DNA from: Perkinsus chesapeaki ATCC PRA-425 | Lineage: Eukaryota > Protista > Perkinsozoa | Reading direction: 5' to 3' | Assembly (NCBI GenBank): GCA_013115145.1 | Contig: JAAPAO010000231.1 | Span: 1 to 49,369 of the forward strand | DNA: 49,369 nucleotides | In this document: positions 736-35,265 of the stretch, in pieces | How the letters are laid out: each line of letters begins with the position of its first letter | How positions within the stretch are numbered: the stretch's first letter is position 1 | Position numbers and translations under genes: made by a program | The notes under the pieces: generated by a model | The model's database searches: none | What the model saw: the letters and a program-made list of their open reading frames with translations, nothing else | What the model was told of the DNA's origin: nothing

Positions 736-3700
736 CTAGGATATCTCATAGGAATCCATGCCAACACGCACTGCCATCACTCGCTCGACACAACTGTCCC
801 GTGCAGATGCCAAAAGTGATCGAGGAAGGTCCGGACAGCCACTCGATTCGTATCTGTGAAACTCGGCGTCACATCACACAGGTATCAATCTTACATCAGT
901 GAATTAGATTTAGGCGCACGGCCAACTCTGCTGGCTGCCAAGGCTTGTAATAGCACTTTTTGATAGCGCTTATATCGAATCTTAGGGAGGAAATGGAGAA
1001 TACGGTATGAAGAATCCTATTACATCATTAACTCCAGTAAGAACCATCACTCCGCCCGGAACAAGCTGATCCGCCGCCATCGACAGGAGCTGCTTGAGTC
1101 GGTCTATATCCGCACCCAACTCGCACGGCGGCGTCAGAAGCAGCAAATCGAATTCACCAGCGGCTCCCTAATAAAGATGCCGATAAGTCATCCAATAACA
1201 AAGGGAAAGAACCCCACTTGGACATTCATCAGAAATGTATTATGAATATTCTCTATAGAATAGCACTGAAATCTAATTAATAATTCATCTCTTATTTACT
1301 ACGTTCTGTGTTTTCCCTTAAAGGCGGTATTATATTCCTCCTTTGAGGTAATATTACTCTCCAAGTAATAACAGTATCGTTTCACCTACTAACGCCTTCT
1401 AATCTATTTTATACACTGAAAGTTGCTCCAGTGCGCGTAGCTATTCGAGCCATCTTCAAAGCCTCAGCGACTCTCGCTTAAGAGAGCGCATTCAACCACT
1501 GACGCGCTCCGGGCACGAAAAAGACACATCAAATTATCGGGGGAAATAAAATATTGGCACCAAGATTTGAACCCGGGTCGTCACCCTGCCAGCCAAACAA
1601 ACTACCTTCTGCGCTCTTTCTTCCAGCCAAACTGTAGGCACCTCATGCTCCGTCACAAAACGACTTTCAATGCTATTTAAACTTATCGATTCCTCCACTG
1701 AACGGCAAAATCTAGCCGACGGCTCCACTGCGACTATCATCGCCTGACATTCAGCAAACAATATCCCCCTCTTCCCTAAATCATACCCAGCTTCCTATGC
1801 TGATACGAAGACAATAAATTCCATGAAATCTCATTCAACTAGATATTCATCTAACATTGTTAACTGCTAATTTACATGTCAATATAGTATTAACGAGGAG
1901 TCTGATTTTTGAAATCCAGTAATACGTATAAGACTAGAATTAGCAGACGGTGAGAAACGGACACTACTGGAATAACCTACCTGCGTTCAACTAGCCCCAT
2001 CGTAAATCGCTCTATTAAATCAGCTTATAATAAGCACTGTTAAACAGCAAATGATAAGAAACATAATAAGTACGAGCTTAAGGGTAGCACTATCACTCAC
2101 TTATTCATCACATTCACCCTAGCCGGGACGAGACCCCTGGTAAAACTTAGATCAATAGAGCAGCTTTATTATTATACACCAATGGACCTATCCGACGTTA
2201 TCTAGTACTAATCAAGGCGTTGCTTTAGACTTCTCAATTACCAACCATATCTCCTTCCCACTTTGATCACAACATCCTCCTTGCCAGTAAGAGCCCCCAG
2301 TATTACCCGATCGCTTGTCCTCGCCTCCTCCAGTAGCCTACCCGTCGCCACGGCAGCTCGACCAGCATCACCATACAGTGCCAATACTTTTCGACGAGTC
2401 GCTTCAGGACGAGCCAGCCGCAGATAAGTAGGTAAATTGCGGATCAGCTCGGCATCTCGCATGGAGCTACCTGAGAAGGGAGGGAGTGATGCTTAGTCTG
2501 ATAAGGGTTGATTGTTATTTTTTTTCAAGTATTTGTATCTTGCCTCGATACACTACTATCCACATTTAATGGCTTCTCTGGACCTTCTTATTATGAACTA
2601 TGTTTAAGCATTTATATATTAATATTGTTATTATAATTAAACCTAGTGACCCATAGTTCTCTATCAGCAATAAAAATATCTAGATGACTCATACGGCGAT
2701 CGAAACCCCCCCTACAGAGTGGCTTACTAACGTTAAGCCTTCTACCCTCTATACAGATATCGTATATTATACACAATAGCTTTGAAAGTAAATAATAGTA
2801 AAAAGTAATATAATCAAGCACTAATGTATAATAACAAATCTCATTACAGATCCGTTTACCAGAGCTACACTAGTACACTGGCCCAAGAGATTCGGTTGGA
2901 GAAAACAGCCAATACTATTATTAAAGGTATGCTTCACTGCATTACACAGCTCACATGGCTAAGATGATGAATGACACCGATCCCGCCCCTACGGAAAGTA
3001 TCTCAACAGCCCTATCGATACTACCTAACCGAGGTCCTCCACTGTCCACAGTATTCCTCAATTTTGTACCACAAAGGTCTTCCCCGTTCTCAGTACTAAA
3101 TGGTCCCTCTTCAGCTGACCAGACCACACGAGACCGTAAAATCGGTAGTAGCTCCAGAGACCGACAGATAGGATCCACATCGTGACATAGGTGAATCTAG
3201 AGGGAAAGATAGTCTTACTGATTAAAGGAAGGACTTACTTTTTTCAAGGTGGGAAAGACTACCCTCAAAGAAGATACTATAAGGTCGATTTGGCGGTCCA
3301 TGAACGCTGTAGTGGGAGAGATGCAAGCTTCATTCGGAGATATGATGTCGATGTATCTGGTGGGGCTTTTGGAGTGGCTAAGAGTGGAAAGCTTACAAGC
3401 CAGGAAGGTGGTCACCATCGCTGTTGATAAGCTGAGCTCAAAAATATCCAAAAAGATACTTTTGAAGTTACTCACTCTGAAGGATTTCTCTCGAGGTCGA
3501 CCGAAAGCCGCTGTTCGTGCTTGAAGCGCTCGAGTGAATGCAGTGAGGAAATAATTATGATCAATTATGGTCTGTGAATTACGATGGAGTATCCTGAGGT
3601 TAAGCATGCATTTGATAAGCTTGAAAGATACGCTACCTGCATGAGGTGTACGCCGATGGGTTATAGGAAGCCACACCATGTGACGTTCCAGGTGACCCAA

Positions 3701-3923: not shown

Positions 3924-4220
3924 CAATCAAGCTGAAGGTCGTGGATTTAGCTTAGATCCCGGGATCGATCCCAGCAATGTCACTTTTTCTTTCTTTTTCC
4001 GCTGCCCCTGTTCATCGGGCACCCTCATATTTCCTTTATACCGACTTTTCCGATGTTTAATGCCTTCTGGCGTCTACCAACATGGCTTTAACTATGACCG
4101 GTGGTTGTGATTTGCATGAATCTTGCAATCTTGCATTTCCTCAACTTTTCAAAATATAGCCTGATCGATTTGCACTGATCTCGCAAGCCTCACGGTCTAC
4201 CAAGTGCGTCTTGACACAAG

Positions 4221-4714
4221 ATGACTGCCTGCCTCAAGAAGACTCGTAAGCATAGAGGAAACGTTTCCCACGGCCACGGTCGTATCGGAAAGCACCGTAA
4301 GCATCCCGGTGGACACGGTAACGCCGGTGGTCAGCATCACCATCGTATCAACTTTGATAAGTACCATCCTGGTTACTTCGGTAAGGTTGGTATGCGTTAT
4401 TTCCACATGCAGAGGAACAGGTAATAGGAATAGTATTTTTGGGATAACAAGTTTTACTGTATTCGTTCAGATATTTCCGCCCTGAGGTAAACGTCGAGAA
4501 GCTCTGGTCTCTTGTGTCCGAGCAGACTCGTCTCCAATATGCCGATAAGAAGGATAAGGCCCCTGTAATCGACTGCACTAAGGCCGGTTACTTCAAGGTC
4601 TTGGGCAAGGGCAACCTCCCCAAGCAGCCCGTCATCGTTAAGGCTCGTTTCTTCTCTAAGAAGGCCGAGAAGAAGATTCAGGCTGCTGGCGGTGTCTGCG
4701 TGCTTACTGCTTAA
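4221..4714 (+). CDS. RPL27A: 60S ribosomal protein L27a (uL15), two exons, intron 4421-4470
   Basis: [26 protein letters not shown]...[24 protein letters not shown], spliced in frame to [18 protein letters not shown]...[39 protein letters not shown]. Confidence 0.97.
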
Positions 4715-5802: not shown

Positions 5803-5830
5803 GTCGCTCGCCTTAAGAGACGAGACATGT
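5803..5830 (+). promoter_or_regulatory. Conserved upstream element of the GDDG secreted-protein family, copy A
   Basis: GTCGCTCGCCTTAAGAGACGAGACATGT, about 108 nt before ATG 5938. Near-identical copies lie at 8742 and 9119. Regulatory role is inferred. Confidence 0.55.
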
Positions 5831-5937
5831 GGCAATTGAGCAGCATAATATTTCCATTATCTGTTCTATTATCTTATTCACTTGTTAATGTGATATAGTG
5901 TGTGATAGTTTTATTTCGTATCTGTTAATAAGATTAA

Positions 5938-6909
5938 ATGATCTTTCAATCATCTATCTGTCGTATTATTATTGCATGTCTAATGTTGGTAGTATCACAA
6001 GTTAGAAGTAGGGCAGTTAAGAAGATGCCACCAGCACATTTCATATTCGGAGATGATGGCCACGGTAGAAGATATTATGTAGATGTTATCCCAGAAGGCA
6101 TGGAGCTGGTTCATGAAGGGCGTGCTGAATATAAGGTAGGCGACTATGACATCTTTCAAAGAACCATTCATCTGAATTCCTCGGAGCGAGGGCCTCCCAG
6201 TCTGCACATGACGGCAATCGAAAGGGAGAGTGGGTCCCAGAACTTCCAAACCACGCTAGAAAGGTCCGCTAATACACTCGTGTCTAGAATCGTGCTTCTA
6301 CGAGACGTACGCGAAATGCCTGGATCTCAAGCGGAAACCAGGGATGTCAGGGGCGAGGATGAACCTATTCTCAAGTCCTTCAATGAGATGTACCGAAATG
6401 GGAAACTTCTATACATGCAGTTCCACGAAAATGACAAACCTGCCTCAAATGCTCTTTACTATGGATTTAATAAAGATGGATTCGACATCCAGATAAGTAC
6501 AGATGGCAAGGGAATGATTAAATCAGTAGTGAAGAATGATCCTAGAAAAGCTGACTATGATGGGTTGGTCTATGTAATGTATGGCAAAGCGATGATGGAT
6601 GTGATACTGTTCAACAACGATGAGGCACTTTATATAGAAACCGAGCAAGTTGACAAAGCCAAGTTCAAGGGAAGGGAGACATTTGCCGAGTCCCGCATGC
6701 CTATGATGAGAGGAGAAGTTCTCGACGAGAATCAGCTATCAACATTGCTAAACTTGGAAGACACGGAGCCTGCTAGAAGCCCGAAGACTTCATCCGTGGT
6801 TAACTTCTTATCATCGAAATTTGGTTTTGGTAAGAAGCGTCAATATCGCCGAGTTGGCAGCCACTCTTCGAGCGAGGATGATGAGCAGGAATCACTCCTC
6901 GGCGAGTAA
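5938..6909 (+). CDS. Intronless secreted protein, GDDG-motif family paralog 1 (323 aa)
   Basis: Long ORF with an N-terminal hydrophobic signal peptide (IIIACLMLVVSQVRS) and FGDDGHGRRYY. Its core NALYYGFNKDGFDIQISTDGKG is shared with 9240-10403. Confidence 0.9.
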   Translation: MIFQSSICRIIIACLMLVVSQVRSRAVKKMPPAHFIFGDDGHGRRYYVDVIPEGMELVHEGRAEYKVGDYDIFQRTIHLNSSERGPPSLHMTAIERESGSQNFQTTLERSANTLVSRIVLLRDVREMPGSQAETRDVRGEDEPILKSFNEMYRNGKLLYMQFHENDKPASNALYYGFNKDGFDIQISTDGKGMIKSVVKNDPRKADYDGLVYVMYGKAMMDVILFNNDEALYIETEQVDKAKFKGRETFAESRMPMMRGEVLDENQLSTLLNLEDTEPARSPKTSSVVNFLSSKFGFGKKRQYRRVGSHSSSEDDEQESLLGE

Positions 6910-6951
6910 AAAGCAATGGTGAGAAGAGGAGAGTGTTGGTGTTAATAATCA

Positions 6952-7105
6952 ATAAAAGATATAATCCATTAATAGTCTATAAATAATATTTTTTTGATAT
7001 TATTTTATTATGATGTTATTAATAATACCAAAACCATTATTCATTTGTATGTTGTATGACACCATGATGTTTATCAATCAACTCATACCGAGTTTTGTTA
7101 AAGTT
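6952..7105 (+). repeat. 154-bp 3'-flank element, copy 1
   Basis: Matches 10444-10597 with 3 mismatches by eye. A degenerate inverted partial copy lies at 7553-7628. Confidence 0.95.
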
Positions 7106-7552
7106 CAAGTTGCAGTCGAAGGCCGTCCAAAGGCACTGCACTCCGAGTTAGGAGTGAGTTAAAGGCCATATCGTATCGCGAGACTTGAGTGCTTCTCATC
7201 TTTCATTGGTAAACATTGCCCTTTATGTGCGCATGCAGACCAATGTGATGGTTGTTCACGCCTTAGAGGCGGACCTTCACTTTCACCAACTCCCAGTCAA
7301 CTGCTAGAACCTGTTAACACTACAAATGTCAACAAGTGGGGGAAAAGGCCTGTCAACTGTGTTTAACGTGACTCGTAGCGCGCTAATCGAGACGTGTTGG
7401 GCGAGGTCACTCGCGTCCTCGGGACCCGGTCGTGTCCCAGCTGACAGATCGACAGATGACTTTGCAAGTTCTTATATAATTTCTTCAGAACATGCATGGA
7501 AGATGTCGAAAAGTGACAAGATCTTCAAACGCTTTTCATATGTATCAATCTT

Positions 7553-7628
7553 GAGAAACTCGAACAAGACTCGGTATGGGTTCAATTGATAGACACGCTG
7601 TCATACAACATACAAATGAATGGTGGTT
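7553..7628 (-). repeat. Degenerate partial copy of the 3'-flank element, downstream of paralog 2
   Basis: Reverse complement AACCACCATTCATTTGTATGTTGTATGACAGCGTGTCTATCAATTGAACCCATACCGAGTCTTGTT aligns with the core of 6952-7105. Confidence 0.85.
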
Positions 7629-7725
7629 CTGGGATTTTTTGAGTAGCGGAAGTACTTTAATAGACTATCAATGTATTATATGTTTTATTGATTAAACATA
7701 AAATATAACAGCAAAAGTCCTCAAT

Positions 7726-8571
7726 CTATTCGTCATTCTCTTCCAACAGTCTATCACTTGTTTGACCCTCACCAGGCCTACGAGGTTTTGATGAAGGAAG
7801 CAGTTTTCTGAATGATCTCCTCAAGCGGCTCATACGTGACGGTTCCTTTCCTAGCTGCTCCGGACCGCCTCCCTCTTTCTTCAATGTTCCATCATCCTGT
7901 ACCAATGGTCTCTCCATAGCCTCATCTTTACCGTGTCTACGTAATCTTAATGGAGGAAGCGTCTTTCTAACCGATCGCTCTATGCGTGTCATGCGTGGTG
8001 TATAACTTTCGGACTTGAGCAAACCTGCCAGCTGATTCTTGGTGAGTGGCATCGAAGCCTGTGAAGGTGTCCACTCATCAAGCTCGTGTATGCTAATGGG
8101 TCCAAGCATACGTAACTGACCTTCGGCGCAGAGTTTATTCAGCTGTTCGACGAGAGGGTCCTTGTTCAACAAGGCTTGTTGGACAAGGTTCTGCCTGGGA
8201 TCGCCCTCCGTGTTCCGTCTTCCGTGAAAGTTGCGGGTCTGAAATCCTGGAAGCAAGATGTATCCGATATTTTCACCGTTGTGAAGAAATATCGCGAACC
8301 ATGAATGTTGTCGTCTGTATTGAGCAGCACGAACTTCTTAACCCCGCCATTTTCCTGCACAGCATAGTACAATGCCGCGATGATACTAATGTTTCCGGAT
8401 GATGCTTACCTTTGATTTCTCACTTGTAGTAGCGTCTCTTATAGCCGCTTGGTACTTCGTACCCTTCCCATCATCCCCCACCAAAGCATAGAAAAGTTCC
8501 TCCGAAGATGCCGTCTGTAACATTAGGGCTACAATTAGCGGCAGGCTTCGGAGTAAGGACGGAGTTCTCAT
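7726..8571 (-). CDS. Secreted protein, GDDG-motif family paralog 2 (shorter, probably two introns)
   Basis: Signal peptide MRTPSLLRSLPLIVALMLQTASS and VGDDGKGTKYQ. DPLVEQLNKLCAEGQL matches EPILKSFNEMYRNGKL, and LTKNQLAGLLKS matches LDENQLSTLLNL. The first intron is GTAAG...TGCAG; the second (GTTCGC...CCAG) is inferred to restore frame. Confidence 0.75.
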
Positions 8572-8741
8572 TTGAACCACTTCGAAGCTAACGCGGTGGA
8601 ACAGAGTATATCTCGAGTGTAAGGGTGTTTTTTCGCGGTGGACGAAGAGCAGCCCTTTATAACGTCCCTTAGGCGAGAGAAGCGGGGTGCGTCTAGATTT
8701 GGAAAGCATCCCGCTGTGTATGTATCACATTCAGACCGCCC

Positions 8742-8768
8742 TCGCTCGCCTTCAGAGACGAGACATGT
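8742..8768 (+). promoter_or_regulatory. Conserved upstream element, copy B (between divergent paralogs 2 and 3)
   Basis: TCGCTCGCCTTCAGAGACGAGACATGT differs from copy A by one base. Confidence 0.55.
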
Positions 8769-9118
8769 TATACTTGTTAAGGTCGGCAACAATTGACGGA
8801 CAACTTTACAACGGTTAATTCCAGTAAGGCTATCGATACGGAACTAGTACACTTGTACCATTCCTTATAGTCAGTATTGCTCCATGCAGTTGGTACTGCT
8901 TTTCCCACAGATTTGCGCTAAGTATGTCAATTCTGTCCCTTTTCTTTACAGCAATTGCTGGTGATGCAGACCTTTATCCTAGATCCTGAGTTATGTCTTC
9001 TATTTGGACGGTCCTCAGAGTTTGGGTAATGGTATCACTGTGACACTGTTGCTTGTCGACTCGTAAATTGTGAGAAAAGCTTGACACGGGCATGCGCGAC
9101 ATGATGCAGTCAAAACTC

Positions 9119-9140
9119 CGCTCGCCCTTAGAGACGGGAC
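9119..9140 (+). promoter_or_regulatory. Conserved upstream element, copy C
   Basis: CGCTCGCCCTTAGAGACGGGAC, about 100 nt before ATG 9240. It is followed by TGAGCAGC, as is copy A. Confidence 0.5.
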
Positions 9141-9239
9141 TTTTTGAAAATGAGCAGCTCAATAATTCCTTGAGAGGCTCTCGATATTGATTGGTTATAA
9201 TGCGTGGTAGTTTAAGTTCATTTCGTTCATTCCGATCAA

Positions 9240-10403
9240 ATGAGATCACCCGTATCGATGCTTTATCGTATAGTCATATTCGCAGCATTAGTTGTTCCAC
9301 AGACTGAGAGCAGTGTGAATGGGGAAACGAGACCAGCAATAATTCTGATGGGAGATGATGGGCAAGGCTCGAGATATTACGCCAAGTTGGCTACAAAAGA
9401 CACGTTCATGACAAGCGTGGACCGGGAATCATATGAGCGGGATGGTTACACATGTATGAGGTCAGACTCAATATTGAACCGAGCTAACAAAGAGGGATAC
9501 GACCGTATGTGGGGTTATACAGTCAGTGACAGTGGTGGCTCTCTCGGAGAGGTGCTTAAGGGCTACATTAGCATTTCCGATAAAGGTTTCCTAACTGCTC
9601 TCGATCGATACTCAACTATATCTGACATGGACAACGGAATTTCGCGACCGCCGGCTGTGCCTGACATTCCTCGGCCCGATTTGATCCTCGAATCTTTCAA
9701 CAATTTGTATAATAATGGTAAAATGCTCTACCTCGAGACCGGCGATCATAAACCGTCTCCGAATGCTCTCTACTATGGATTTAATAGCGACGGTTTTGAT
9801 ATTCAAATCAAAACTGATCAGAACGGTCTAATAAGCTCGGTGAAGAACCATGATCCAAATGGAGTCAGCTACAACAGGTTGCTCTACACCATGTACGGAA
9901 GGGCCATGATGGTGACACTGCGCAATGAGATTAAACAAAGGATGATAATGACCGAGCCTGTTGACAAAGATAAATTTGATGGCACGAACCAGAGCTTTCC
10001 AGCAGCTCGCTTGGATACTCTCGAGGGGATCCCTCTTCGGAAGGGACAGCTGCCACAATTATTGAAGTCCCAATCACCACCCGAGGGCGAACCGTCTGCC
10101 AGCGGGGAATCAACATTGGCTCCCTTCTATAGAAGGTTCCGGAACTTGCTTCCTGCATTAATACCACGCACACGTGGTGTGAGAAAAGATGATGGTAAAA
10201 GATCGACAGAAGATGCAGTGCGCTCCCTCACCGATATCTTGTCACCGACAGGACAGGGAGACAGTGCGGACAAACCAGAACAGGAAAAGACACACGGTAC
10301 CCATCGGGGGAGGTCTCTTAGGTTACCGCATCTTCGATCAAGAACTCGTAAGGGTGGTGAGAGTGGACCAAAATATAGACAGTTGGAAAAGGATGGCGAA
10401 TAG
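9240..10403 (+). CDS. Intronless secreted protein, GDDG-motif family paralog 3 (387 aa)
   Basis: Signal peptide (IVIFAALVVPQTES), MGDDGQGSRYY, PSPNALYYGFNSDGFDIQIKTD core, and a charged low-complexity tail. Confidence 0.9.
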   Translation: MRSPVSMLYRIVIFAALVVPQTESSVNGETRPAIILMGDDGQGSRYYAKLATKDTFMTSVDRESYERDGYTCMRSDSILNRANKEGYDRMWGYTVSDSGGSLGEVLKGYISISDKGFLTALDRYSTISDMDNGISRPPAVPDIPRPDLILESFNNLYNNGKMLYLETGDHKPSPNALYYGFNSDGFDIQIKTDQNGLISSVKNHDPNGVSYNRLLYTMYGRAMMVTLRNEIKQRMIMTEPVDKDKFDGTNQSFPAARLDTLEGIPLRKGQLPQLLKSQSPPEGEPSASGESTLAPFYRRFRNLLPALIPRTRGVRKDDGKRSTEDAVRSLTDILSPTGQGDSADKPEQEKTHGTHRGRSLRLPHLRSRTRKGGESGPKYRQLEKDGE

Positions 10404-10443
10404 ATGGAGAATTGTTGGTGTTACTATCTAATATATTTAATCG

Positions 10444-19564: not shown

Positions 19565-19924
19565 ATGGCAGTATCTATTCCAGACTTGGAGCAACAGATA
19601 GCGGACCTAGAGGCGGAGCTGGCTCAAGGTTCAGCCATGCATTTCATACCAAAAAAGATTCCTTCTCTCCTTCAGTCGCTAGTATCCTTGGTGCCTCGTC
19701 TACCGACGTTGATCAGTACGAGGATTTGGACCGGCCTGCCGACTTTAAGCCAGGTCGACGGAGCTCCCCTGTGAAGCAACATACCAAGCATCTTGGTAGG
19801 CTTCTTGGGACAATGCTATTGCAACTCGGTAGGAGGCCATTCCGTACTTGGAAATAACTTAATTATTATTCAATAATAAATTCAATTTTATTATACAGGT
19901 GCATCTTTTGGCCACCCTGTGTGA
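19565..19924 (+). CDS. Small three-exon hypothetical protein (~69 aa) with N-terminal coiled coil
   Basis: Splicing gives MAVSIPDLEQQIADLEAELAQ|VASILGASSTDVDQYEDLDRPADFKPGRRSSPVKQHTKHL|GASFGHPV*. It is head-to-head with the minus-strand gene at 19438. Confidence 0.5.
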
Positions 19925-20339
19925 TATATTTATCTCTACAAGGCTTAAGGTCTGTTCTTATAGGCTTTTTACAATAGACACTATTAAAGGTTATAAATGA
20001 GGATATACTCCCATCAATACAATACTTCTGGTCGGTTCAAATAGGCTTCTTACAGATAGATCTCTCGTGAAGCATTCTCCTTTTTTGGTATATTATTACT
20101 AGTCCCCAAATACTAGTAACATTACTAGTATCACTGCTCCTCCCTACAGCCCTCACACTTTGAAGCTCGCCGAACCGTCATGTGGCATTCGGCAATTTCA
20201 CTTAACATGATAGCGCATTTTTGTATATTACCAGCAAATATCAATTTTACCTGGCGAAGAGGAAAAATGAAATCTCAGAAGTGCCTCCGCATTAGTTAGT
20301 GCATCGATCATCACAAAGGAGATGGGTTTATTAAACTGG

Positions 20340-23300: not shown

Positions 23301-25888
23301 GGTTTATAATATAAAGGAAGCTCCCTTCAAAAGTCCCTGAACAACTCTTGTATTTCCTTAACCCTTGTTGTGAGATTGTCACCTGCGTAACTCCTCGTCT
23401 AGCCGCATATTGTCTGGCTATAATGGTCGCAGTTTGGGTCGCTGGTGCTATGTCAGAGGTACTCGTCTAGGCTCACAGTGGTATGCAGTCCGAGAGACGT
23501 CCGCGAGAAGTATTTCCGCCCCGTTTAGACTTACTTTGGCATATTTCAGCTCGCTTTTAGTAACATGGAGCTTGAATGTAGAAAGGGGTGTCTATAATCA
23601 ACTCTAGTCCATGTCGTGAAATATACTCCTATGTTATATAATAGCGAGTCACCATCGCTTTTTGGACATGCCGACTCGGGCGACTTGATGCCCTGCTGTT
23701 GTGGTAGTCTTTCATTACCTTTAGATTATTCGGGCAGTTGCATGTCTGCCGGTAGTCGACCAACCTCTGGTAACAGCTCTCGCTAACATGACTGAGAGGG
23801 CAGTAAAGAGCTCATCGGCGAGGCCAGCGGATACGCAGCAACTTGCAAAACATTTGGCGAAGCTTTTGATAAAGAGAGCGAAGGTGAGCTGAGTGGTAGG
23901 GTGGTTAATGGGTGTATGGTGATAACAGGCATCGGGCGCTGGACCGGGACAGAATATGGCTACGGCAGGGGGAGCATCGAATGGATTATGGACTATATTG
24001 ACTGATAGGATTGTTAGAGGACAAGGTAGAAGGGACGGAGAAGATTCTTCACGAATCCTGGATGCGGTTATATGGTCATTTGTGACGGAGCGATAATAGT
24101 AATACTGACCTTAATATCGTCTTTAACTGAATCGATCTGGAGCAGGCCAAATTATTAGCATTCCGTGGCTTTATTAGGTTATATTAGACAGGATAATGTA
24201 CTACTACGACCCATATATATTATCTCTATAGAGGTTTGTTACATTACTTTCTATACTGTAGCTTGATTGAATTCTAATCTCAACTTGGCGGCAGTTATTC
24301 CGTGTCTCTATTATTGACCCCTACCAGGTCCGATATCGGTGCCAGGAGCGATTAAAGCGCTCATGTCCCTCGGAACTACGCACGACTCGGTAAAGCATTT
24401 AATGCTGGCAACTTGCTGAAGTTTGTTCGGTTTAGTTGGTGAGCAAGCGACCTTTAACGAAGCTTGAGAAGGCATCTGATGTTGAAGAGCTTGCTGAGGC
24501 AATAGCGTTGGCAACCGACCCAAGGTGGGATGGGTTGACTTGGTTGTGTGAGCTGTTGGCAGCAGATCAAATACGTGCAAGAGGCTGTTTGCTGAGAAAC
24601 GAGCGTTGTATGAGACTGACGCCAAGGCCATATTTGCGGTCCTGTCAGCTAGCGCTGTGACGGGTAATATTGGCAGAGGAGGCGTGATAGTAATTATTGG
24701 ATTATAAGTTGTATGGAAACTCAAACTAGAACATTTTACGGCCATGCTCCCGCCGGCAAGTGCACTATCATTCTCAAAGGAGCGCATGCAAATATGTGGC
24801 GCGTGAGAATTATGATCGGATGAAATGAAATGGGATAATTGGGATCCTTACTCATTTTTGAAGTAGAACTGAGAAAGCGGAAACTTGAGACCTCGGAGCC
24901 GAATAGACGCCATTACGGGTGAGACGGTTCACTTTCTATTCTTGTCGAACTTTACGACATTATGAGAAGAGGCTTTGAATTGGTCATTTTCAGCTGCCGA
25001 GCATGGCACAGGAAGTCCGGAGGCAACAATGTTGCTAAGACAGCATCGTCAGCGTATATTAGACTTGAATGAGGAGGATGCCCCGGCCTGGAAGAGGCTG
25101 TTGGTTTGGTTATGTTTGTTACCAAGTGACACGGTGGCATTGAATTCACTTAAAAAGAGTATGGAGGAGGAGATGGGAAAGGAGAAGGGTGTGGCTCCTG
25201 GAGTGCAGAGAGTCAGGGATGTCATGGCGCTGCTGGGGTGAGTTGGATTGATAGAATAACTCCTGTCGGCTGTCTTCGATATTGGCAAAGCGCTGCGGAA
25301 ATACAGGTGTTAATACTTCATCACTACGTCAATATCTTCCTCTGTAAAATGCCTTATGACACAGCAGGTCTTTATTTACTCTAAAGTAGTACACAGACGC
25401 AATTATTCAAATGAAAGCTTCCCTCTGCTGGATGCTTTTGCGCGGTGGGTTGACGGCTGCTTTTAATGGGAAGGTCGCTGGTTCTAATCCCCGTTGGGGC
25501 ATTTTTATTAGATATTCTTCCGAGTCCATTACGTATGATTATGTAGTAGATGGTGTGGTGAAGGCAGATATTGCCTTACCCCAATACATGGTAAGTTGTC
25601 GAAGCGCCGGTAAATTAAGATTATTATTAGACGGCGATTGTCATTGAGCCTCAAGCGTTGTTCAACGTCCACAGTAAGCGTTATCAACGGACAGGGTGGA
25701 CGCTATTGAGAGTGAAGGCGCTGCAGCAAAAGGGATGGCAGGTAGGTCGTGGGCTCGATCCTCGGTTGGGGTATTTTTAATAGGTTATTGGCCCCGTGGT
25801 GCCTGAGTCTTTCAGATCGGAGGAGGCATCGGCAGATTCTAAACAACCTGGAAGTCTGGTGCAGTTTTTGAACGACCAGCTGAATGAC
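20340..25888 (+). CDS. Large multi-exon helical-repeat protein with a RAP (RNA-binding, Apicomplexa-abundant) domain
   Basis: Spliced exons ITYDYVVDGVVKADIALPQYM|TAIVIEPQALFNVHSKRYQRTGWTLLRVKALQQKGWQ|VIGP match the RAP pattern DIA.P...IAIE......TG.T.L+.R.L...GW.V. Upstream exons are Leu/Ala-rich and helical. The 5' end is approximate. Confidence 0.7.
20607..20810 (+). repeat. ~200-bp dispersed direct duplication, copy 1
   Basis: GTCATCGAGCCTCTCAGTGTTCGTTTGGGGTCA...GACTACCCAAAGG is nearly identical to 29102-29300 over the first ~100 bp and more diverged after. Confidence 0.92.
21140..21278 (+). repeat. AT-rich ~32-bp tandem repeat, about 4 imperfect copies (intronic)
   Basis: Unit TTCTCATATTAACTTTATTATTTACCTTCCCA. 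Confidence 0.85.
25445..25511 (+). other. 67-nt intron of the RAP gene resembling the 3' two-thirds of a tRNA (Lys-TTT-like loop)
   Basis: GTGGGTTGACGGCTGCTTTTAATGGGAAGGTCGCTGGTTCTAATCCCCGTTGGGGCATTTTTATTAG. It contains a CTTTTAA anticodon-loop-like heptamer, AGGTC variable loop, T-arm, TTGGGGCA and TTTTT. Exons join in frame (LDAFAR|YSSES). Confidence 0.8.
25742..25783 (+). other. 42-nt intron inside the RAP domain that is a sense tRNA-like 3' fragment
   Basis: GTAGGTCGTGGGCTCGATCCTCGGTTGGGGTATTTTTAATAG. Removal restores QKGWQ|VIGP. Confidence 0.8.
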
Positions 25889-25929
25889 GTAGTCACGCGC
25901 CACGAAATTATTCGACAGTGGTGCGACAG

Positions 25930-28900
25930 GTTCCCTATGATGCTTGTATTACCATTGATGGTGATGTCGACAGGGAGGAGTTGTCGAAGTCGGTTGGTTC
26001 GATGGGCTTGGGGGTCGGGGTGGGCACTAAGCTCATGCCTGGTGGACAGAGAATAAAGAAACTGGTAAGGAAGGCGGAGCGATGCATTTGAAGAGGTTGG
26101 AATCATGATATATGTTATTGGCATGTGCTCTTAGAATAGGCAACATTTAGAGGTCTATTGTAAGCTACACCTTTACAATACTTCCAGTTGCTGATAGACG
26201 TACTTCGTAAAATCGTATTTGTGAACAACTTGTGGTACCGTAATAGATTAATACCACTGCTATTGTCGCAGATTGTAGGTGTAAAAGTGTTGGCAATTTG
26301 CCAATGGCAAATGTTCAACACTAGCTCTGGTTAGGAGGGTGGCAAGAGTTGAACTTGTTGCCAGTCTCCTGTCTAGGGATCAAAAATTGTTGGGAGGCTT
26401 CATCCAATATACCTTAGTAACTGGACGAACTTGTGGGAGCAACATGTTGTCTGGCGAGCCGTGATTGGGCCTATATTTGAGATGACGAAGTTCCCCACAG
26501 TTGAACCTTCTATCTGATGGAGTACTTATATTAATATGAATTATTATATAGTACAAAAACGTTTCGATCTCAACTGTACTTTTAGTAATTACTAGAAGCT
26601 TTAGGATGGTTAGAATTATTAGTTATTTAGTAGTATAATTACTCACTGCTAAATACTTACTAGTAGTTACTGCTTTCTACTACTATTTGTTAATAGAAGG
26701 ATGACTGGATGTTTGTGATCAGGTTGTGGCTAACTGTAAGATGCCACTGGTGGCCAAGATTCTCTTGACGATGCTCCGGCTCGGCACGACGGTGGATATG
26801 ATAGTCCTGAAGAACCTCGGTTTAACAGATAACATGACGGATGTTCTGTCGGAATTCATTATGACGTAATAATGGCGCTGAATGACCGCGCGCCAGGAAA
26901 TTATTGGCGGCCTTTTCAGATACGTGTTGCGGCACCCTACGTTGTCCTTGGATTTATCAGAGAATCATCTCACTGATGTTTGCGCCAATCGATTGTTGAC
27001 GGCGGTGTCGACGGGAGCTAGCGGAGCGAGGGTAGGGTGGGAATGGTTTAATTGGAGATGAAGATAACAGTTTCCTATCAGTTGGTATAATTAATACAAG
27101 TATACTTGTACTTACAATATCTACAATACTCACAACTCCGCCGTCGTTGCATTGCCATACTTTAATTGGGTGTCTATCTAGACTGATAGACTAGTAACTA
27201 ACCGCGTTCCTCCTTACAGTAGTGGGAATGTAAATGGTTTTATTATACAACGCAACATTTTAAATAATATTATTTATATTATATAAAATGTTCCGCGAAT
27301 GTATGAGGGCATTTATCGACTTTAAGTAATTTTAATAATAAAGGAAGGAAGAACTTCTCTACTACATACTTTAAACTTAATGTACAATAACTATCACCGG
27401 TAGAGCTTGTGATAAGTCGGAAATGTTACAGTTGGTGCTCAATTGGTAATTTATTTGTATATCGAAGCGCGTCACCACACCTTTTCAAAGGTTACCAGTG
27501 ATGTTGGACACAAGTAGTTTGAGAAAATAATGCTTCGGAGATTTAGTTATGACGGATTGAAGTGTGGGCCTTTTAGGTGAGTTTGTGGCTAGGAGGCAAC
27601 TGTATCAAGGAGGCTGAGAAGATAGTCACTTTCGACAGTGGAATAGTACAGGTAAATTGCATTAAAAATGCCGGACGGTGGGATCGAACCCGCGTACTGC
27701 TGCACTCAGGGCGGTAATGACATCCTGGTCAAGATGGAGGATAACGTAGACGGAGTGAATGGCGTGGATCTGACGGCCGAGACGAGAAGTGTTGTGACGT
27801 TGTGTGGTGACGTCTACACTCAACAGCAGCAGATGGGTGCCGTTGGAACGTGAAATGGTTTCTTGTGGTGTAACATTGAATCATGGAAGTTGCTTGTTGA
27901 GTTTCGCACCCGGAAGATTCTACTAGTGGAAAGATACTTGTGCGGCGGTCTGCATAGCGGTTAGCAGTCGCTCGGTAGGGGAGATTTCTCGTGCTGAGTC
28001 AGTGAGGACGTTGTAACCGAGGAAGACACTGGAGTCGTTGAATGTGTTCTTTTGCGAAGTGTTTTCCGGACTGAGCTGTTAGTTCTGGTCCATTTCTATC
28101 TGTAGGCATTTCTATTGGCGTTGGTACAATGATATCATAATTTCTCAAATAATACATTTCATCTTTTGCTACATGGTAGAAGCCCGTTCTCTATCACTCA
28201 CACTGGGATTGACACTAGGAACAACCGAAGATAGTTGAACCGAAAGTTGAACATATCCGCCCGCCTGGGAGTTTTACATATCGACCGCTAATCGTGTTTG
28301 CCGCTAAAACATTCTGGCACTCCGTTTGAATTTGAAGGTTAGACTGTTGACTTGGTTTAGTCGATACTTTTTTCCTCTCAACAATCGAAATGATGTTCCC
28401 CGGTATGATGGCACCTCCTCCGAAGGAGTATATCGCCCCGAAGTACAAGGCGCCTCTGAGGTGAGTTGAACAGCTTGAGTGTTGTCGACTTTTATTTTCG
28501 TGAGAACATCCGTTTTTCCAATGATAAGCTCGATGAGAGAGACGTGAGATAATGAGAACACTGTTAGCGATCGCTTCAGGGATTGTCTAGCCCCGCGGGA
28601 ATGTGTTCCTCGGGTGCCAATTATTATTACTACTGCGAAGATATGATAGAAATTCCGGTCGGAAATGTGGCCAAAGAGAAGCGCCAAACTTTGGTGTACC
28701 TTTTTACTGATACTGGTGGTGACCAAATTAAATATTCCTGTACGCTTCGCTCCGCCGATTGTAGTGTTATTCTTCAGGGCCGTCGGATTTGCACTTTCGA
28801 TCTATCTGATGATACGCTTTGGTGACGAGTTGGAGATGCCCGAGAACCCCAGGCAGTAGAGAAGATACAATTGCACAAACAGCTGTCCCCAAAAGTCTAT

Positions 28901-29718: not shown

Positions 29719-31899
29719 ATGTCCGCCCGTCATCCGCCTACTCGTGACGTTCCCCTCGGCTCCTTCGGCAAGAGTGCTCTTCTTGTCATCGACGTTCAAA
29801 GACAATGCTCGGTCGCTGGTGAAGGCATCTGGGCGGATACTTCTCGTGCGGACAACCCTTATTTTTTCAACCAAGTCGATAATATGTTGGGCAATATCAG
29901 CAAGCTCCTCGACGCCACTCGTAAGATGGAGAGCCACTCCGATGTTATTTATACCTATATTGAGGCCTTGACCGCCGACTGCCGTGATGCTAGTCTGGAT
30001 TATAAGCTCTCTGGAGGGCCCTCTAGACCCTTGTTGGTCCCCAAGGGCAGTAAGGGCGCAGAGATTTTGACGCGGGTTCGACCTGAAGCAAATGACATTT
30101 TAATTCCAAAGACATCCTGTTCGGTCTTCCAAAGCACCAATATCGATTATGTTCTCAGAAATCTGGGCACAAAGCATCTGGTGGTGGTGGGCCAGCTCAC
30201 CAACCAGTGTGTCGAGTCCTGTGTCCGTGATGCCGCCGATCTCGGATATCTGGTGACTGTCGTCGAAGATGCATGTGCGGCTCTCTGCCAGGAGGACCAC
30301 TCTTCGGCTTTGAACAATCTGAAAGGCTTTGCTCGCATCATGTCGACCGCGGCGGTCCTCACCGAGCTGGCGGTGAGCGACCCAACGCCTCCTTCTGCTG
30401 CCCGCCAGGAGGAGGTGGTGCCGAAGCCTAAAGAGCCAGTGGTTTGGAATAGACTACCTTTCGTCAATTGCCACTATGAGCACTTCTCACCGTTCAAGCT
30501 CGATTTTTGCGGCGATCCTTTTGGACTCGCACAAGCCTTGTTGTCATCTCTGAAGGCCTGCGGCGTGCAGCTCCTGCGTTTCATGGTTTGTGATGTGAGC
30601 GGTCAGATCAGGAGCAAGTCGATAGCTATCCACAACTCGACCGCTGCAGAGTCGCTCCTCAAAGGCGTGCCATTCGTTACGTGCTTGAATGCCCTGCCGA
30701 GCTACGGTGATGCTATTTGCGGGGGAGCGTCGTCGACGGGCTCACAGAACCTCGTGGCTGATTTCTCGACTCTCACTGTTGTTGGGAAGTCCGCCTATGT
30801 TTTCGGTAATATGTTCGACCCTATCACCGACAGACCTGGTCTGTGCCCTCGCTCGATTCTAAAGGAGCAGTGCCTCAGAGCAGAGAAAGACTTTGGTATT
30901 CGGATCCAGTGTGGCGTGGAGATGGAGTTCATCCTGTTCGAGCGTGGAGTGCAAGCTTCAAGCTCGGATATGCCCTTCAAACCGTTGGGAGATCCGTCTA
31001 ACTTCGCCAGCGACTCAGCTATGACCGCTTCCCGGGCCGAAGCCTTCATCAGCGATCTCTTGAAGGGACTAAGCGAGCAGCCCAATACGTGCCGTCCAGT
31101 CGACTTGTGCCACGCCGAGGCTGCTTGGGGACAGTTTGAGGTCTCTTTGAGGTACATCGACGATCCGGTTAAAATGGCGGACTCGGTGGTGACGACCAGA
31201 CAGACGCTTCGACGCCTTGCCGACGTCCATGGCCTTGGGCTCTGTCTGTTGCCAAAGATAAGCTCGACCGCTGTAGGGTCGGGAATGCACTCTCATTGGA
31301 GCTTCTGTGATGTCGGAGGTGAAAAGAACGCTTTGGTGTCAGAGGAAGGTCGCTACGGCTTGTCAGTGAAAGGCAGCCAGTTCATGTCGGGCGTTCTTGG
31401 CAACCTGAAGGCTCTGACCGCGGTAACGCTCCCTTGTACTAATTCTTATAGAAGGATGGTCGATGGTTACTGGGCAGGGACCTACCAGTGCTGGGCGTAT
31501 GAGGACAAGGAATCCCCGATCAGGCTCTGCGGAGTTGATACGCTCACTCGCAACTCTGGAGGGCTGCCTAGCAACTTCGAGGTTAAAGCGATGGATGCGC
31601 TCTGCAACCCCTATCTTGCCTTTACCGCCATCATCTCCTGCGGGTTGGCCGGGATCACTAACAAGAGCGTGCTGCCGGAACCAGTGCCTCTGGACTGCGT
31701 GGATCGAGCGGCAGTGTATGACTCTGTGCCGAGAGATCTCGGTACGGCATTGGACCATCTCGAGGGGAACACCGTCATTAAGGAGGCTTTTGGTGAGGTG
31801 ATGATGAGCTATTTTTTGTGTGTGAAAAGGGCAGAATTTTCGTATTACAAAGACATGGCGATCGGTGATGAAGTTAAGGCGCTTGTCGGGCTCTTCTGA
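29719..31899 (+). CDS. Intronless isochorismatase-like cysteine hydrolase fused to a glutamine synthetase-like (FluG/GlnA-type) domain, 726 aa
   Basis: N-terminal ALLVIDVQ, PKTSCSVFQST, LVVVGQLTNQCVESCVRDAADLGY. C-terminal GVEMEF, HAEAAWGQFEV, GSGMHSHWS, NSYRRM..GYWAG, NFEVKAMDALCNPYL. Confidence 0.95.
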   Translation: MSARHPPTRDVPLGSFGKSALLVIDVQRQCSVAGEGIWADTSRADNPYFFNQVDNMLGNISKLLDATRKMESHSDVIYTYIEALTADCRDASLDYKLSGGPSRPLLVPKGSKGAEILTRVRPEANDILIPKTSCSVFQSTNIDYVLRNLGTKHLVVVGQLTNQCVESCVRDAADLGYLVTVVEDACAALCQEDHSSALNNLKGFARIMSTAAVLTELAVSDPTPPSAARQEEVVPKPKEPVVWNRLPFVNCHYEHFSPFKLDFCGDPFGLAQALLSSLKACGVQLLRFMVCDVSGQIRSKSIAIHNSTAAESLLKGVPFVTCLNALPSYGDAICGGASSTGSQNLVADFSTLTVVGKSAYVFGNMFDPITDRPGLCPRSILKEQCLRAEKDFGIRIQCGVEMEFILFERGVQASSSDMPFKPLGDPSNFASDSAMTASRAEAFISDLLKGLSEQPNTCRPVDLCHAEAAWGQFEVSLRYIDDPVKMADSVVTTRQTLRRLADVHGLGLCLLPKISSTAVGSGMHSHWSFCDVGGEKNALVSEEGRYGLSVKGSQFMSGVLGNLKALTAVTLPCTNSYRRMVDGYWAGTYQCWAYEDKESPIRLCGVDTLTRNSGGLPSNFEVKAMDALCNPYLAFTAIISCGLAGITNKSVLPEPVPLDCVDRAAVYDSVPRDLGTALDHLEGNTVIKEAFGEVMMSYFLCVKRAEFSYYKDMAIGDEVKALVGLF

Positions 31900-32376
31900 T
31901 GAGCTTTCCTCTCCACACAAACTCATTATTGTCTCCACACTACCTCTGCTGCCGGCTCCGCTACAACTGCTCGCATAGGTCTCTTTTTATCCCTTAGGGT
32001 CTAGTTAACAAATCTCCTACCGGGATTGGATGGTGGCAGGGGGTGCCGTTAGTTGATCTTTAAAATGCGTCTCCGATCACCACGGCACAGTCCTCTCGGT
32101 CACGCTGCGATACAGTATCATCATCACATGAGACCTTCCGGCGGGTAGCTTATTGATTCTTCCAGTGAGGGTAAATTTCCGACCGACTTTTGCTACAAAC
32201 ACTCCCAACATCCGAACAGCCATCTCGTCTTCTTTTCGGGGAAAAATCGTTAAAATATTTTATCGACTTGAAATCAGAATTGAAAGTATGTTCAGCGAAG
32301 CATTGTCGCAGCTAAGATGCTCTGTACTGCTCTGCCTTGTAAAAGTTGACCGAAATTTCGGGAGACTCTTATCGAG

Positions 32377-35265
32377 TTGTTGGAGATGTTGGCAGAGGAA
32401 AAGATATCTCCATCGAGTAGTAAAATCGCGGTTCAAGCTAAGATTTTCTCTTTATCCATGCCGAACTCCGCACCTGATTGCCGGTGTGCTGCTGATGCTG
32501 AGCTACCACAGTTGATCACGAAAAAGGCCGATGATAGTGAGGAGGAGTGCGAGTGGGATAGAAACATTGCCAAGGAGCCCGGAGGGAGAAATAGGGCAGT
32601 AAATGTGCATCAACAGGTAATAAGGGAAAGGGTGGAATTTTGTGCAGGTCCAAGAGGCTCTTGGATGGGGAGTTTGGTACTGCGAAATCCTAGTATGTGA
32701 TAAGATAATGATGATTGAATCTCAAGAAGGTTTTTTTCGTTATGTTATCTGAGCTGCGACTACAGCTTGCACAAAAATGGTGCTGGGAAAAGCGGAAAAA
32801 TTCAGATCGTCTCAGGCTAACCCTTAATTGGTTGTTTTCATACCACTCTCTCCGTTATGTAGATACAATTGAGGGGGGTCAGGTTGGGCACGCTATTACA
32901 AAATTCGATTGGCCTGTTCAAAGGTGAATCGCCGGAGGCCGCTGGTAGTAAGGGGCAAAGTGGGCTTTATGCTGATGATGGTGTTGGGCAGATGATGATG
33001 ACCCGTATAAGTTGTCGAAGGAGTGCAAGGAAGATCCTGGGCTTGATTATTTCCTGTCTCACGCATGGGTACGATGGCGAAGAGGAGAGTGCGCGATTGG
33101 GCGGGTTCATCTAAATAGTCTTGTGGACATGCGTTTCAAGGAGGGCCAAAATTCATTCTATCGCGGAGATATGATGAGAAATATCGAAGAGGCTTCAATC
33201 AAGAGGGCTCCGTGATCTCTGGTCACTTATAATGTCTCGACAGCTTGACTTACCTAGCTCCCTGGGGGAGCTAGAGAAGAGAAAGTAGATATAGGTATAG
33301 CTCTCCTAGGTAATATCACCCAAAGGCTCCAGGCTTCAGTTTCGGAACATTTCGGGTGGTCCCTGTACGGCGCAGCTTCGTCGAGCAAGGTCTGTTTCAG
33401 ACTATGTCATCGATCCCCAAGACGCTATTTTTGTTGGTCCATTTTAACCGTAAAGCTATGATAGTTTTATCGACCATTTTGGCGTTATTGGTGGGCATAG
33501 TGAAGCTGGTAATGTTTATTATGAAATATGATGGATGGATGATGTCGATGATGCCAGGCTCCATTAATGCGGGGGTGAGCTTGGATACGGTTGGAACCTC
33601 GAATGAACTAGCTAGTTCTGGGAGTAGTAGATACAGTGTATCGTATCAGTCGTTATATTACAGGGCGCGCAAGAAATTATTCGTCTTGAGCTCTTCAGCA
33701 AAACTAGGACGATTCTTTCTCGCATTTTATAAATTGGTTCGAGGGGCAGCAGCGTCTATGTTTCTGTGGATGGAAACACTTTAGCCGTACTTAATGATAT
33801 TAGTATTTACTTTTAATATTGTCATAACTTTTTACTTATTACAGTATGGTTAATGATATAGATAAACTCAACAGCAGCAAGAAGGGCTTTCCTTCGCTCT
33901 ATACCACATGATGATAAGACTCGTCCTGATCGAATTGTTATGAGAGCATGGTCTTTTTACGCAATCTCTACTAGATGCTCCTACACAGGCGCACGCCTTG
34001 TCTGTCCATGCCGAGCAGTTATCAGATATCTTTACATGTTATCTCTCAGATCGTTGGATACTTCCTTGGTCTGTTCTTTGGCCATTGGATCCTACCAACT
34101 CGAAAGAAGACAATATTTGTTGATAAGGCATGTATCAGACAGTGTCGTGCCCGGCACGATATGGAATATGATAAGGAGCTATTGGAGAAGGATAATCCTG
34201 AAGAGACTCATATTATGCCGGCAATGCGACAAAGGACACTCTCATCGGGCAGCAAGATCATGTCTGATCCGACGGACTGTCCGGCATGTTTGGAGATGAA
34301 AGCGGGAATTGACAGAATAGGTGGGTTAGTGGGATTCATTTGATGGGATGCTTTATACTTTGGGGAACTGTATGTATAAATCTCATCAGTGTGATGATCG
34401 GTAGTATGAGTCTCCCAATACAGTAACGGTGCATGGGGCTGTCTCCAGGCATTGGCTTTCATTATATCGAAGCGCGAATCAGAAGAAACGATAATACCAT
34501 ATTCGACTTGTAGTTGGTTCCCTATCAGAGTTATTTGATTGTCTCTCCCCTCGAATACCCCAACTTGTCCCTGTATATTAATACTCTTTCTTTAGGTGAC
34601 TATCTAGAGCATTCATCCACTCTCTTGGTGGTGCTGCATTGTGATTATTTTACCCGACTTTGGTGTGTATATGAGTTCGCGTGCTTCCTTCGACGCCACA
34701 AGCCTAAAGACATTCACATAATATCGCCACAAGGGGTTGCTTTATGTCTCATTGGTCCCGTCCTTATTATTACCTTGAAGGTTCTAAAAGGGAGCCTTCT
34801 CGAATCGGTAATATGCAACAGCTGGGAGAATTTTTCCCAACTTTTCCTTTTTTCATTACAATTTTTCCGGCATTACTCCCTCAACGTGCTTTGAGAAAGT
34901 CACCGATTTTTTGGCAAAAGTTCGGCACAATTTTCCCAAGTTCACACGCGAATTTTGGATTGGAAAAAGTGTGAAATTTTCGGGAATATTTTACCCTTTC
35001 AGCCCCACGAGTACATTGTATCATTCTTAACTGGCCTCGTATGGTTGCTAATCGATATGATAGCTGTTTGTGAGCTGTCAGATTATACGTCCAAGACACT
35101 TAGTGAAAATATTGGGGTAATAATGCAGGGTGCGGGGATCGAACTCGCGCCTTCTTACTGTTGAAGCAGGTACCTCTGCGGTCCTTTAAAATAGCGGAGA
35201 CGCATTGTGCATTTGAAAGTGATAGGGATTTGATATATGACAATATCGGTCAGGACTATGGCCGG
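32377..35265 (+). CDS. Multi-exon membrane protein with split HET-like motifs
   Basis: Exons DYFLSHAW, hydrophobic segments (IVLSTILALLVGIVKL), IFVDKACIRQ, STLLVVLHCDYFTRLWCVYEFACFL, and THCAFESDRDLIYDNIG. The start is approximate. Confidence 0.75.
35117..35169 (-). other. 53-nt intron that is an antisense tRNA-like 3' fragment
   Basis: GTAATAATGCAGGGTGCGGGGATCGAACTCGCGCCTTCTTACTGTTGAAGCAG. Reverse complement reads AAGGCGCGAGTTCGATCCCCGCACCCTGCATTATT. Exons join in frame (SENIG|VPLRSF). Confidence 0.8.

Follow-up and report, generated by a model that had tools for sequence, protein, structure and literature searches.

Modules resembling tRNA-gene 3' ends in introns of Perkinsus chesapeaki and their persistence in related species

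Perkinsus species are alveolate parasites of bivalves such as oysters and clams. We analyzed a stretch of 49,369 nucleotides (nt) from P. chesapeaki ATCC PRA-425 (contig JAAPAO010000231.1; the whole stretch is hereafter called the window), in which an original prediction had described a family of spliceosomal introns built from the 3' ends of tRNA genes. The origin of new spliceosomal introns and the reasons for keeping short intron sequence are the open questions addressed here. Among the genes of the window are a Kelch/BTB gene and, at 29719-31899, a gene for a 726-residue isochorismatase-glutamine synthetase (GS) protein whose nearest relatives are those of P. olseni (64%) and P. marinus (61%). 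The results show that the window contains eight copies of a 35-nt module, named i1 to i8 after their introns, and that all of them lie within segments running from GT to AG on the gene strand. Open frames are joined when each of the eight segments is removed. Four modules are in the sense orientation (i1, i4, i5 and i6) and four are antisense (i2, i3, i7 and i8). The introns are as follows.

i1, 1168-1605, minus strand: putative intron of 438 nt; sense module at 1547-1581, near the 5' end of the intron
i2, 12432-12480, minus strand: predicted intron of 49 nt in the Kelch/BTB gene; antisense module at 12441-12475 on the plus strand
i3, 13347-13397, minus strand: predicted intron of 51 nt, in frame and free of stops, in the same Kelch/BTB gene as i2; antisense module at 13359-13393 on the plus strand
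i4, 16184-16227, minus strand: putative intron of 44 nt; sense module at 16186-16220, with TTTTT directly before AG
i5, 25238-25511, plus strand: predicted intron of 274 nt (5' end probable); sense module at 25472-25506, at the 3' end of the intron
i6, 25742-25783, plus strand: predicted intron of 42 nt, starting GT-AGGTC and consisting nearly entirely of the sense module (25744-25778)
i7, 27652-27709, plus strand: predicted intron of 58 nt; antisense module at 27664-27698 on the minus strand
i8, 35117-35169, plus strand: predicted intron of 53 nt; antisense module at 35119-35153 on the minus strand, with TTATT as trailer

Architecture of the modules

When the modules were read in the tRNA sense and aligned on the T-loop, each showed the following order: the variable loop (5 nt, with C48 last), the first T-stem strand (5 nt), the loop T/C-T-C-R/T-A-N-N, the second T-stem strand (5 nt), the acceptor 3' strand (7 nt), a discriminator A and a run of T, with CCA absent. 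The predicted arrangement of T-arm, acceptor strand, discriminator and T-run without CCA was thus recovered in all eight, and every T-loop alignment reads G53-T/C-T-C-R/T-A-N-N. The strict T-loop consensus (G53 T54 T55 C56 R57 A58 .. C61) was matched by five of the eight modules, and the other three each carry one change. The distance from T-loop to T-run, made up of 5 nt of T-stem, 7 nt of acceptor strand and the discriminator, is 13 nt in seven modules and 14 nt in i2. The T-run follows directly after the discriminator A (it reads TTATT in i8), and it abuts the AG in i4, i5 and i6. A73 is present in all eight window modules and in 14 of 15 intron modules over three species, and Y72 in every module. 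Similarity to tRNA begins at about position 32 to 44; the 5' end of the module is variable (about 32, 37 or 44) and the 3' end is fixed.

We searched the window with a pattern drawn up beforehand from general tRNA knowledge, GTTCRANNC-N11-14-TTTT, using 100 shuffles as the control. This gave eight matches at six loci, compared with a shuffle mean of 0.29 and a maximum of 2, so that the expected enrichment over shuffled sequence was borne out for the whole module; five of the six loci are predicted introns. A position weight matrix (PWM) was then built from seven modules and scored on the eighth. The left-out modules scored 16.7 to 36.4 bits, whereas the best score in shuffled windows averaged 10.5 bits with a 95th percentile of 15.6. 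With the full PWM, the eight modules scored 31 to 43 bits and the next-best real sites in the window 15.5 and 13.7 bits, a gap that marks the modules as a discrete class. The bare motif of the B-box, a promoter element of RNA polymerase III (Pol III) genes, was not enriched alone in the window; the signal comes from the whole module.

The modules do not look like working tRNA parts. Their T-stems are degenerate, with two to five of five pairs, and only i1 has all five, two of them G-U. ARAGORN at default settings called no tRNA gene in the window, and at a lowered threshold it called i5 together with four random sites. A-box and cloverleaf are absent from the modules, the 5' half of the tRNA gene being missing. 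For i6, inspection by eye found neither a 5' acceptor strand in the upstream exon nor compensating changes between species. The broken T-stems, together with the lack of a tRNA call by Rfam or by ARAGORN at default settings, indicate that the modules are relics of tRNA genes. A tRNA 5' half within i1 was considered as a candidate, and was not supported by Rfam and ARAGORN. The acceptor strands of the modules group into several clusters, which would fit several tRNA sources.

The open frames joined by removal of i1 extend for 63 and 61 residues; its module scored 16.7 bits when left out and 30.7 bits in the full model, and its nearest relative is an intron module of P. marinus (locus L002, G53 at 1355), with 24 of 30 positions identical. 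The frames flanking i4 are open for only 21 and 30 residues, and i4 is the least secure intron of the eight. Removal of i3 restores the Kelch spacing PRARY/RTSAVIH. It had also been claimed that all well-supported B-box-like motifs are intronic. This stood for the eight modules, but a weaker module-like site at 22189-22223, described below, is exonic.

Comparison with P. olseni and P. marinus

Gene finders were unsuccessful because codon bias is weak, and a local screen for frame-joining segments performed no better than on reversed sequence. The de novo intron census was replaced by a comparison with P. olseni, using a 21.6-kb locus (L005) syntenic with about 18.1-36.8 kb of the window. Orthologous introns were identified in two genes by aligning exon blocks and searching both species jointly for GT and AG equally far from them, giving 25 orthologous intron pairs in total, the i7 pair being placed by eye. 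Synteny of the genes that bear the introns does not extend to the P. marinus GS locus. In a search with a Kelch exon repeat proteins dominated, and one short P. olseni fragment was obtained. An intron without a module served as a control:

33069-33400, plus strand: control intron without module, predicted from the P. olseni comparison and confirmed by RNA contigs

RNA contigs from two small runs of the same species label contain a GT..AG joint that skips exactly 33069-33400 (332 nt), which supports the comparative method. The same contigs read through a weak 42-nt predicted intron, and this prediction was dropped. Introns in the genus have been reported to be mostly short and of the GT-AG type (PMC3101222).

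The PWM trained on the window found, at 17 bits or more, seven sites in the 21.6-kb P. olseni locus against 0.005 expected, and three in a 21-kb P. marinus locus against 0.01 expected, two of the latter within apparent GT..AG introns. One of the seven P. olseni sites is the T-arm of the sole real tRNA gene there, a cloverleaf-competent tRNA-Ala(TGC) downstream of GS (L003 5060-5131; L005 16860-16931). A matrix trained on intron modules only thus picked a real tRNA gene, which independently supports the tRNA likeness. This tRNA gene is absent from the corresponding place in the window, and its acceptor strand matches no module. In about 90 kb of the three species, no strong module was found outside genes. 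We found no published description of these module introns in the Perkinsus literature on introners, tRNA or introns. As far as sequence comparison goes, these data confirm the modules as real, discrete, tRNA-gene-derived and genus-wide in Perkinsus, and their tRNA-gene origin and intronic placement in both orientations are well supported.

Orthologous intron positions were found in P. olseni for six of the eight introns (i2, i3, i5, i6, i7 and i8). The i2 position corresponds to a module-free intron of 333 nt at 628-960 of a 1-kb P. olseni contig (L004); a PWM scan of L004 gave a best score of 6.8 bits anywhere, in an intron other than the i2 orthologue. For i3, contig L004 begins inside an intron that ends at the same codon, and the annotated P. 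olseni fragment P0221 starts exactly after this i3-equivalent intron. The joint splice-site search paired L005 6528-6646 with window 25238-25511, and the exon ends GCTGCTGGG/GTGAGT and GTTGTTGGG/GTAAAA align between the species. The predicted 3' end of i5 at 25511 therefore holds, but the intron probably begins at 25238 rather than at 25445 as first proposed; its orthologue carries a module (G53 at 6609, 17.5 bits). The i6 orthologue (L005 6895-6950) also starts GTAGGTC and has a module of 21.3 bits. The i7 orthologue (L005 7761-7816) has the ends GTAAAT..CAG and an identical 14-nt core, GGTGGGATCGAACC, whereas the stem partner of this core is not identical. The i8 orthologue (L005 20389-20442) has a module of 25.5 bits with 26 of 35 positions identical, and the stem is broken by different changes in the two i8 orthologues.

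PWM scores per intron were bimodal, lying either at 17 bits and above or at 8 bits and below. In the 25 pairs, four P. chesapeaki introns carry modules (i5, i6, i7 and i8), and P. olseni carries them in the same four and in one more (Fisher p = 4e-4); module introns are about 16-20% of the introns in the two compared genes. All four testable modules thus sit in an orthologous P. olseni intron. The original prediction had offered two readings: retention of B-boxes as TFIIIC docking sites, or recent or ongoing intron gain by 5'-truncated pre-tRNA copies, for which the intron positions should be absent from sister species. Gain is contradicted for six of the eight: all six testable positions are present in P. 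olseni, i2 and i3 as positions and i5 to i8 together with the module. By the criterion set in the prediction, this counts against gain only, and colonization of existing introns is unaffected. Because these six introns predate the species split, a recent gain of the six is not supported.

The neutral background is close to saturation: four-fold sites of P. chesapeaki and P. olseni are 34% identical at 741 sites, against 25.5% at saturation. Of seven non-module short intron pairs, five aligned no better than shuffles (z -1.4 to 0.6) and two did better (z 3.0 and 2.2); the corresponding values for module introns were z = 2.6 for i6 and z = 3.5 for i8. The four orthologous module pairs are identical at 97 of 140 positions (p = 3e-17 vs the four-fold rate), one base having been taken out of the P. 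olseni copy of i6 to restore register. Identity is 49/68 in the T-arm and, by a hand count, 34/44 over the B-box positions 52-62; it is 14/28 in the acceptor strand, not significantly above neutral. The T-arm figure, compared with 34% at four-fold sites, indicates that the B-box consensus GGTTCGANNCC is likely to have been kept by selection. Folding energy of module introns showed no excess over shuffles or control introns. Recognizable since before the species split, the pieces are probably kept or renewed rather than junk. A 69-nt intron at 36031-36099 contains a block, GCGCGCGCC..GTGATCGATTTG, that is conserved with P. olseni (z = 2.2); on the minus strand it reads TCGATC..GGCGCGC..TTTTT with a spacing one base too long, and looks like a decayed module.

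Evidence of turnover was also obtained. The closest of all module pairs are both from P. chesapeaki. One is i2 and i3 (25/30 identical), introns of a single gene whose likeness extends over their full length, and the other is i4 and i6 (25/30 identical). Two module introns are species-specific: i2, of 49 nt against 333 nt in P. olseni, and the P. olseni intron 20964-21017, of 54 nt, whose counterpart at window 36265-36657 is 393 nt long. Each is similar to a neighboring module intron of its own gene, and the P. olseni i6 module is nearer to the P. chesapeaki i5 than to the P. chesapeaki i6. It looks as if the content of an intron has been replaced by a copy of another module intron, and renewal by such copying could account for part of the persistence of the modules. 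No consistent target-site duplications and no terminal repeats were found; the intron ends share repeats of 1-4 nt, of the AG/GT type usual for any intron.

Module-like sequence was also found in coding exons. The GS proteins of P. marinus (L002 11100-11140) and P. olseni (L005 10470-10510) contain 10 extra residues, PGPR[IV]EPG.., which are the antisense translation of a module core (tRNA T-arm); they occur in all alleles and strains listed, and are lacking in the window protein and in outgroups. The window itself has one such site:

22189-22223, minus strand: module-like sequence in a coding exon, in frame and antisense; a strict-pattern match scoring 13.7 bits

All 35 positions of this site are identical in P. 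olseni (L005, G53 at 4237), and in the P. marinus counterpart about 21-27 nt are missing from the middle. The site lies in a coding block of about 95 nt (22165-22262; L005 4188-4285) that P. chesapeaki and P. olseni share almost unchanged, even at synonymous sites, whereas the flanking exon DNA is, by eye, only roughly 60-70% identical. No Rfam match was found in the block. The in-frame exonic copies show that modules enter coding DNA, which favors insertion as the origin of the intron copies, and an ancient origin by insertion is possible.

A borderline module of 15.5 bits was observed at 3954-3988 on the plus strand, reading AGATC CCGGG ATCGATC CCAGC AATGTCA C TTTTT with another AGGTCGTGG ahead of it; this may be a copy that has decayed or is compound.

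Origin and persistence of the modules

We propose, tentatively and at somewhat short of even chances for the proposal as a whole, that the modules are fossil tRNA 3' ends and old inserts, whose B-box core has come under purifying selection, most likely for TFIIIC docking, with turnover in addition. Each module consists of the variable loop, the T-arm with the Pol III B-box, the acceptor 3' strand, the discriminator and the Pol III T-run terminator. Such pieces may have entered genes long ago as DNA or cDNA inserts. In a sense copy, the T-run would act as the pyrimidine tract just before AG, and in an antisense copy its A-rich complement would sit just after the 5' splice site. With splice signals supplied by the T-run or its complement, the piece could be removed as a near-minimal intron. 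Purifying selection at the DNA level would afterwards hold the B-box core, and some module introns may have been copied to other intron positions of the same gene, displacing longer introns.

The B-box is the binding site of the tauB part of TFIIIC. That the same motif is kept in sense or antisense, and that the sequence rather than the stem is conserved, suggests recognition at the DNA level. A role like that of extra-TFIIIC (ETC) sites, where TFIIIC would dock without Pol III, appears the most economical, since the B-box binds tauB and the motif is kept in both orientations without an RNA-structure signal. Retention of the core for a DNA-level function is thus supported but unproven, and TFIIIC docking would be the most likely reason for it.

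Several observations weigh against this proposal. The Rfam tRNA model found no match on the whole window or on stretches cut to permit truncated hits, and the real tRNA-Ala(TGC) of P. olseni has no T-run in the 49 nt after its discriminator. The T-run and discriminator are as well kept as the B-box, which a function of the B-box only would not predict. Orthologous module pairs share 20-23 of 30 positions, compared with a mean of 17.5 (standard deviation 2.8) for any two modules; since orthologous pairs are barely closer, and the closest pairs lie within one species, persistence may reflect renewed copying rather than selection. The comparison is based on two genes in one species pair. The module introns are predicted, the RNA joint covering the control intron 33069-33400 only, and i1 and i4 are putative introns placed solely by frame-joining.

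The same data were considered under other explanations. Renewal, not selection, would keep the modules recognizable if they were a self-propagating, introner-like intron family seeded by a tRNA gene end, in which whole module introns are copied and overwrite others, for example by reverse splicing and recombination or by an unknown element. The module does make up nearly all of the 42-58-nt introns, and the close within-species pairs (i2 with i3, i4 with i6), the minimal species-specific introns that resemble same-gene neighbors (49 vs 333 nt, 54 vs 393 nt) and the P. olseni i6 module with its nearest match in i5 are what such a family would produce. Against it, a new intron position was found in none of the tested cases, and consistent target-site duplications or terminal repeats were not found. 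Several acceptor-strand types imply that there is no single master copy; the alike pairs can be explained by descent from a shared tRNA species; and splice sites are lacking in the in-frame exonic copies, which reverse splicing would not predict. We regard this explanation as unlikely, though as one to be taken seriously. Pieces of tRNA genes, or cDNA of U-tailed pre-tRNA, might instead have been caught at DNA breaks and have survived as neutral filler where harmless. A fixed 3' end (discriminator and T-run, no CCA) with a variable 5' end, both orientations and in-frame exonic inserts of about 30 nt in some species only are consistent with this, as are the unusually many tRNA genes reported for P. 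marinus (PMC3706591). Neutral filler should not persist in four of four testable orthologous introns where neutral sequence is saturated, however, nor should it be missing as strong modules outside genes in the three species; insertion should also lengthen an existing intron, yet the module introns are minimal. We therefore hold this explanation to be improbable.

An RNA-level splicing element, in which the T-loop core serves as branch region or hairpin and the T-run as pyrimidine tract, was given slightly less weight still. By a hand count, the 3' splice site of each of the seven short introns follows the core at a distance of 17-31 nt, the T-run meets the AG in the three introns named above, and the TCGA core is palindromic, so that the RNA would be similar from either orientation. 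But the P. olseni core can be as far as 43 nt from the 3' splice site, UCGAU and UCGAA fall outside the usual yUnAy branch consensus, most introns have no module, and the folding energies gave no excess over shuffles or control introns. Chance resemblance arising from ordinary intron signals (GT, an A- or T-rich tract, AG) deserves next to no credence. The unenriched bare B-box and the silence of Rfam and ARAGORN are in its favor, but the shuffle controls refute it: the excess over shuffles is 20- to 1000-fold with a discrete score gap, and the modules were replicated in two other species and at orthologous introns.

Comparison with known systems places the modules near several of them. In C. 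elegans, ETC sites overlap suspected tRNA-pseudogene repeats (CeRep3) and are over-represented in introns (PMC6950938). ETC sites and modules are alike in being promoter elements derived from tRNA genes, apart from working tRNA genes, that would act at the DNA level regardless of orientation; yeast and human ETC sites, too, have the B-box only. Those of C. elegans, however, have both A- and B-boxes (PMC6950938), and the modules comprise the last third of a tRNA gene, in which acceptor strand, discriminator and terminator keep the exact spacing of a tRNA; they also form the bulk of minimal spliceosomal introns, and their binding by TFIIIC is a prediction. Introners are transposon-derived intron families found in Micromonas, Aureococcus, fungi and dinoflagellates, including Amoebophrya (PMC7789003, PMC11282704). 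Like them, the modules are a sequence family that forms whole short introns in unrelated genes, with signs of copying and turnover. The modules differ in having no terminal inverted repeats or target-site duplications, in that the tested positions are old and common to both species, in a core that is a tRNA gene end in either orientation within the intron, and in copies that are 58-83% alike rather than near-identical.

Short interspersed elements (SINEs) derived from tRNA, and tRNA pseudogenes, share with the modules descent from a Pol III tRNA gene, the B-box and a terminal T-run. A SINE has a 5' tRNA-related head with A- and B-boxes followed by body and tail, unlike the modules, which are about 35 nt long and have no 5' half, no A-box and no flanking repeats. 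Split or permuted tRNA genes, as in Nanoarchaeum and Cyanidioschyzon, resemble the modules in that a tRNA 3' half stands alone, apart from its 5' half. The modules, by contrast, have broken T-stems, no complementary 5' half and no bulge-helix-bulge motif. The broken stems, the missing 5' half and the antisense orientation of every second copy relative to the one transcript known argue that the modules are not functional half-genes.

In Perkinsus, a genus of which several species have been sequenced, many minimal introns thus consist largely of one easily recognized class of sequence, whose origin, age, turnover and constraint can be measured from existing genomes and RNA-seq. If TFIIIC binds the B-box cores, the genes of an alveolate parasite would contain ETC-like sites of unusual density and conservation; if instead the introns are renewed by copying, they would represent a mobile intron of a new kind, derived from a Pol III gene. 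The broadest statement, that tRNA ends seeded many Perkinsus introns, that their B-boxes function in genes of RNA polymerase II and that the introns renew themselves by copying to other introns, we think rather unlikely to hold in full. If it were true, about one in six introns would carry a mark set by TFIIIC or by a different factor that recognizes this DNA motif, and a Pol III promoter element would be linked directly to the birth and upkeep of spliceosomal introns. In practical terms, module pieces are translated as protein in two or more gene models of P. marinus and P. olseni, and gene finders may mis-call module introns.

Genes of the window and minor observations

The GS gene at 29719-31899 has one exon, in which an isochorismatase domain is fused to the catalytic domain of a glutamine synthetase. 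Among named clusters, the closest is a Lengsin-like family found mostly in diatoms and other eukaryotes. The P. marinus GS locus has no counterpart of window 22.3-28.4 kb.

The introns of the 25 orthologous pairs add up to 6371 nt in P. chesapeaki and 3012 nt in P. olseni. Many P. chesapeaki introns are 300-660 nt long where those of P. olseni are 48-53 nt, among them 26065-26722, 27032-27576, 35266-35892 and 24026-24327.

Gene models differ between the species as well. In the window, 32458-36816 is annotated as a 554-residue gene, followed from 37936 onward by an 890-residue FHA/kinesin gene, whereas the syntenic P. olseni stretch is one gene of more than 1772 residues (SAM, FHA, RING, kinesin), suggesting that the P. 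chesapeaki model is probably split. The annotated 1144-residue gene at 19719-28859 corresponds to two P. olseni genes, of 1023 and 185 residues. At 5938-10403, a 387-residue open reading frame (9240-10403) is annotated as a 351-residue protein. The only database relative of this reading frame is one P. chesapeaki paralogue with 41% identity, the family being species-restricted.

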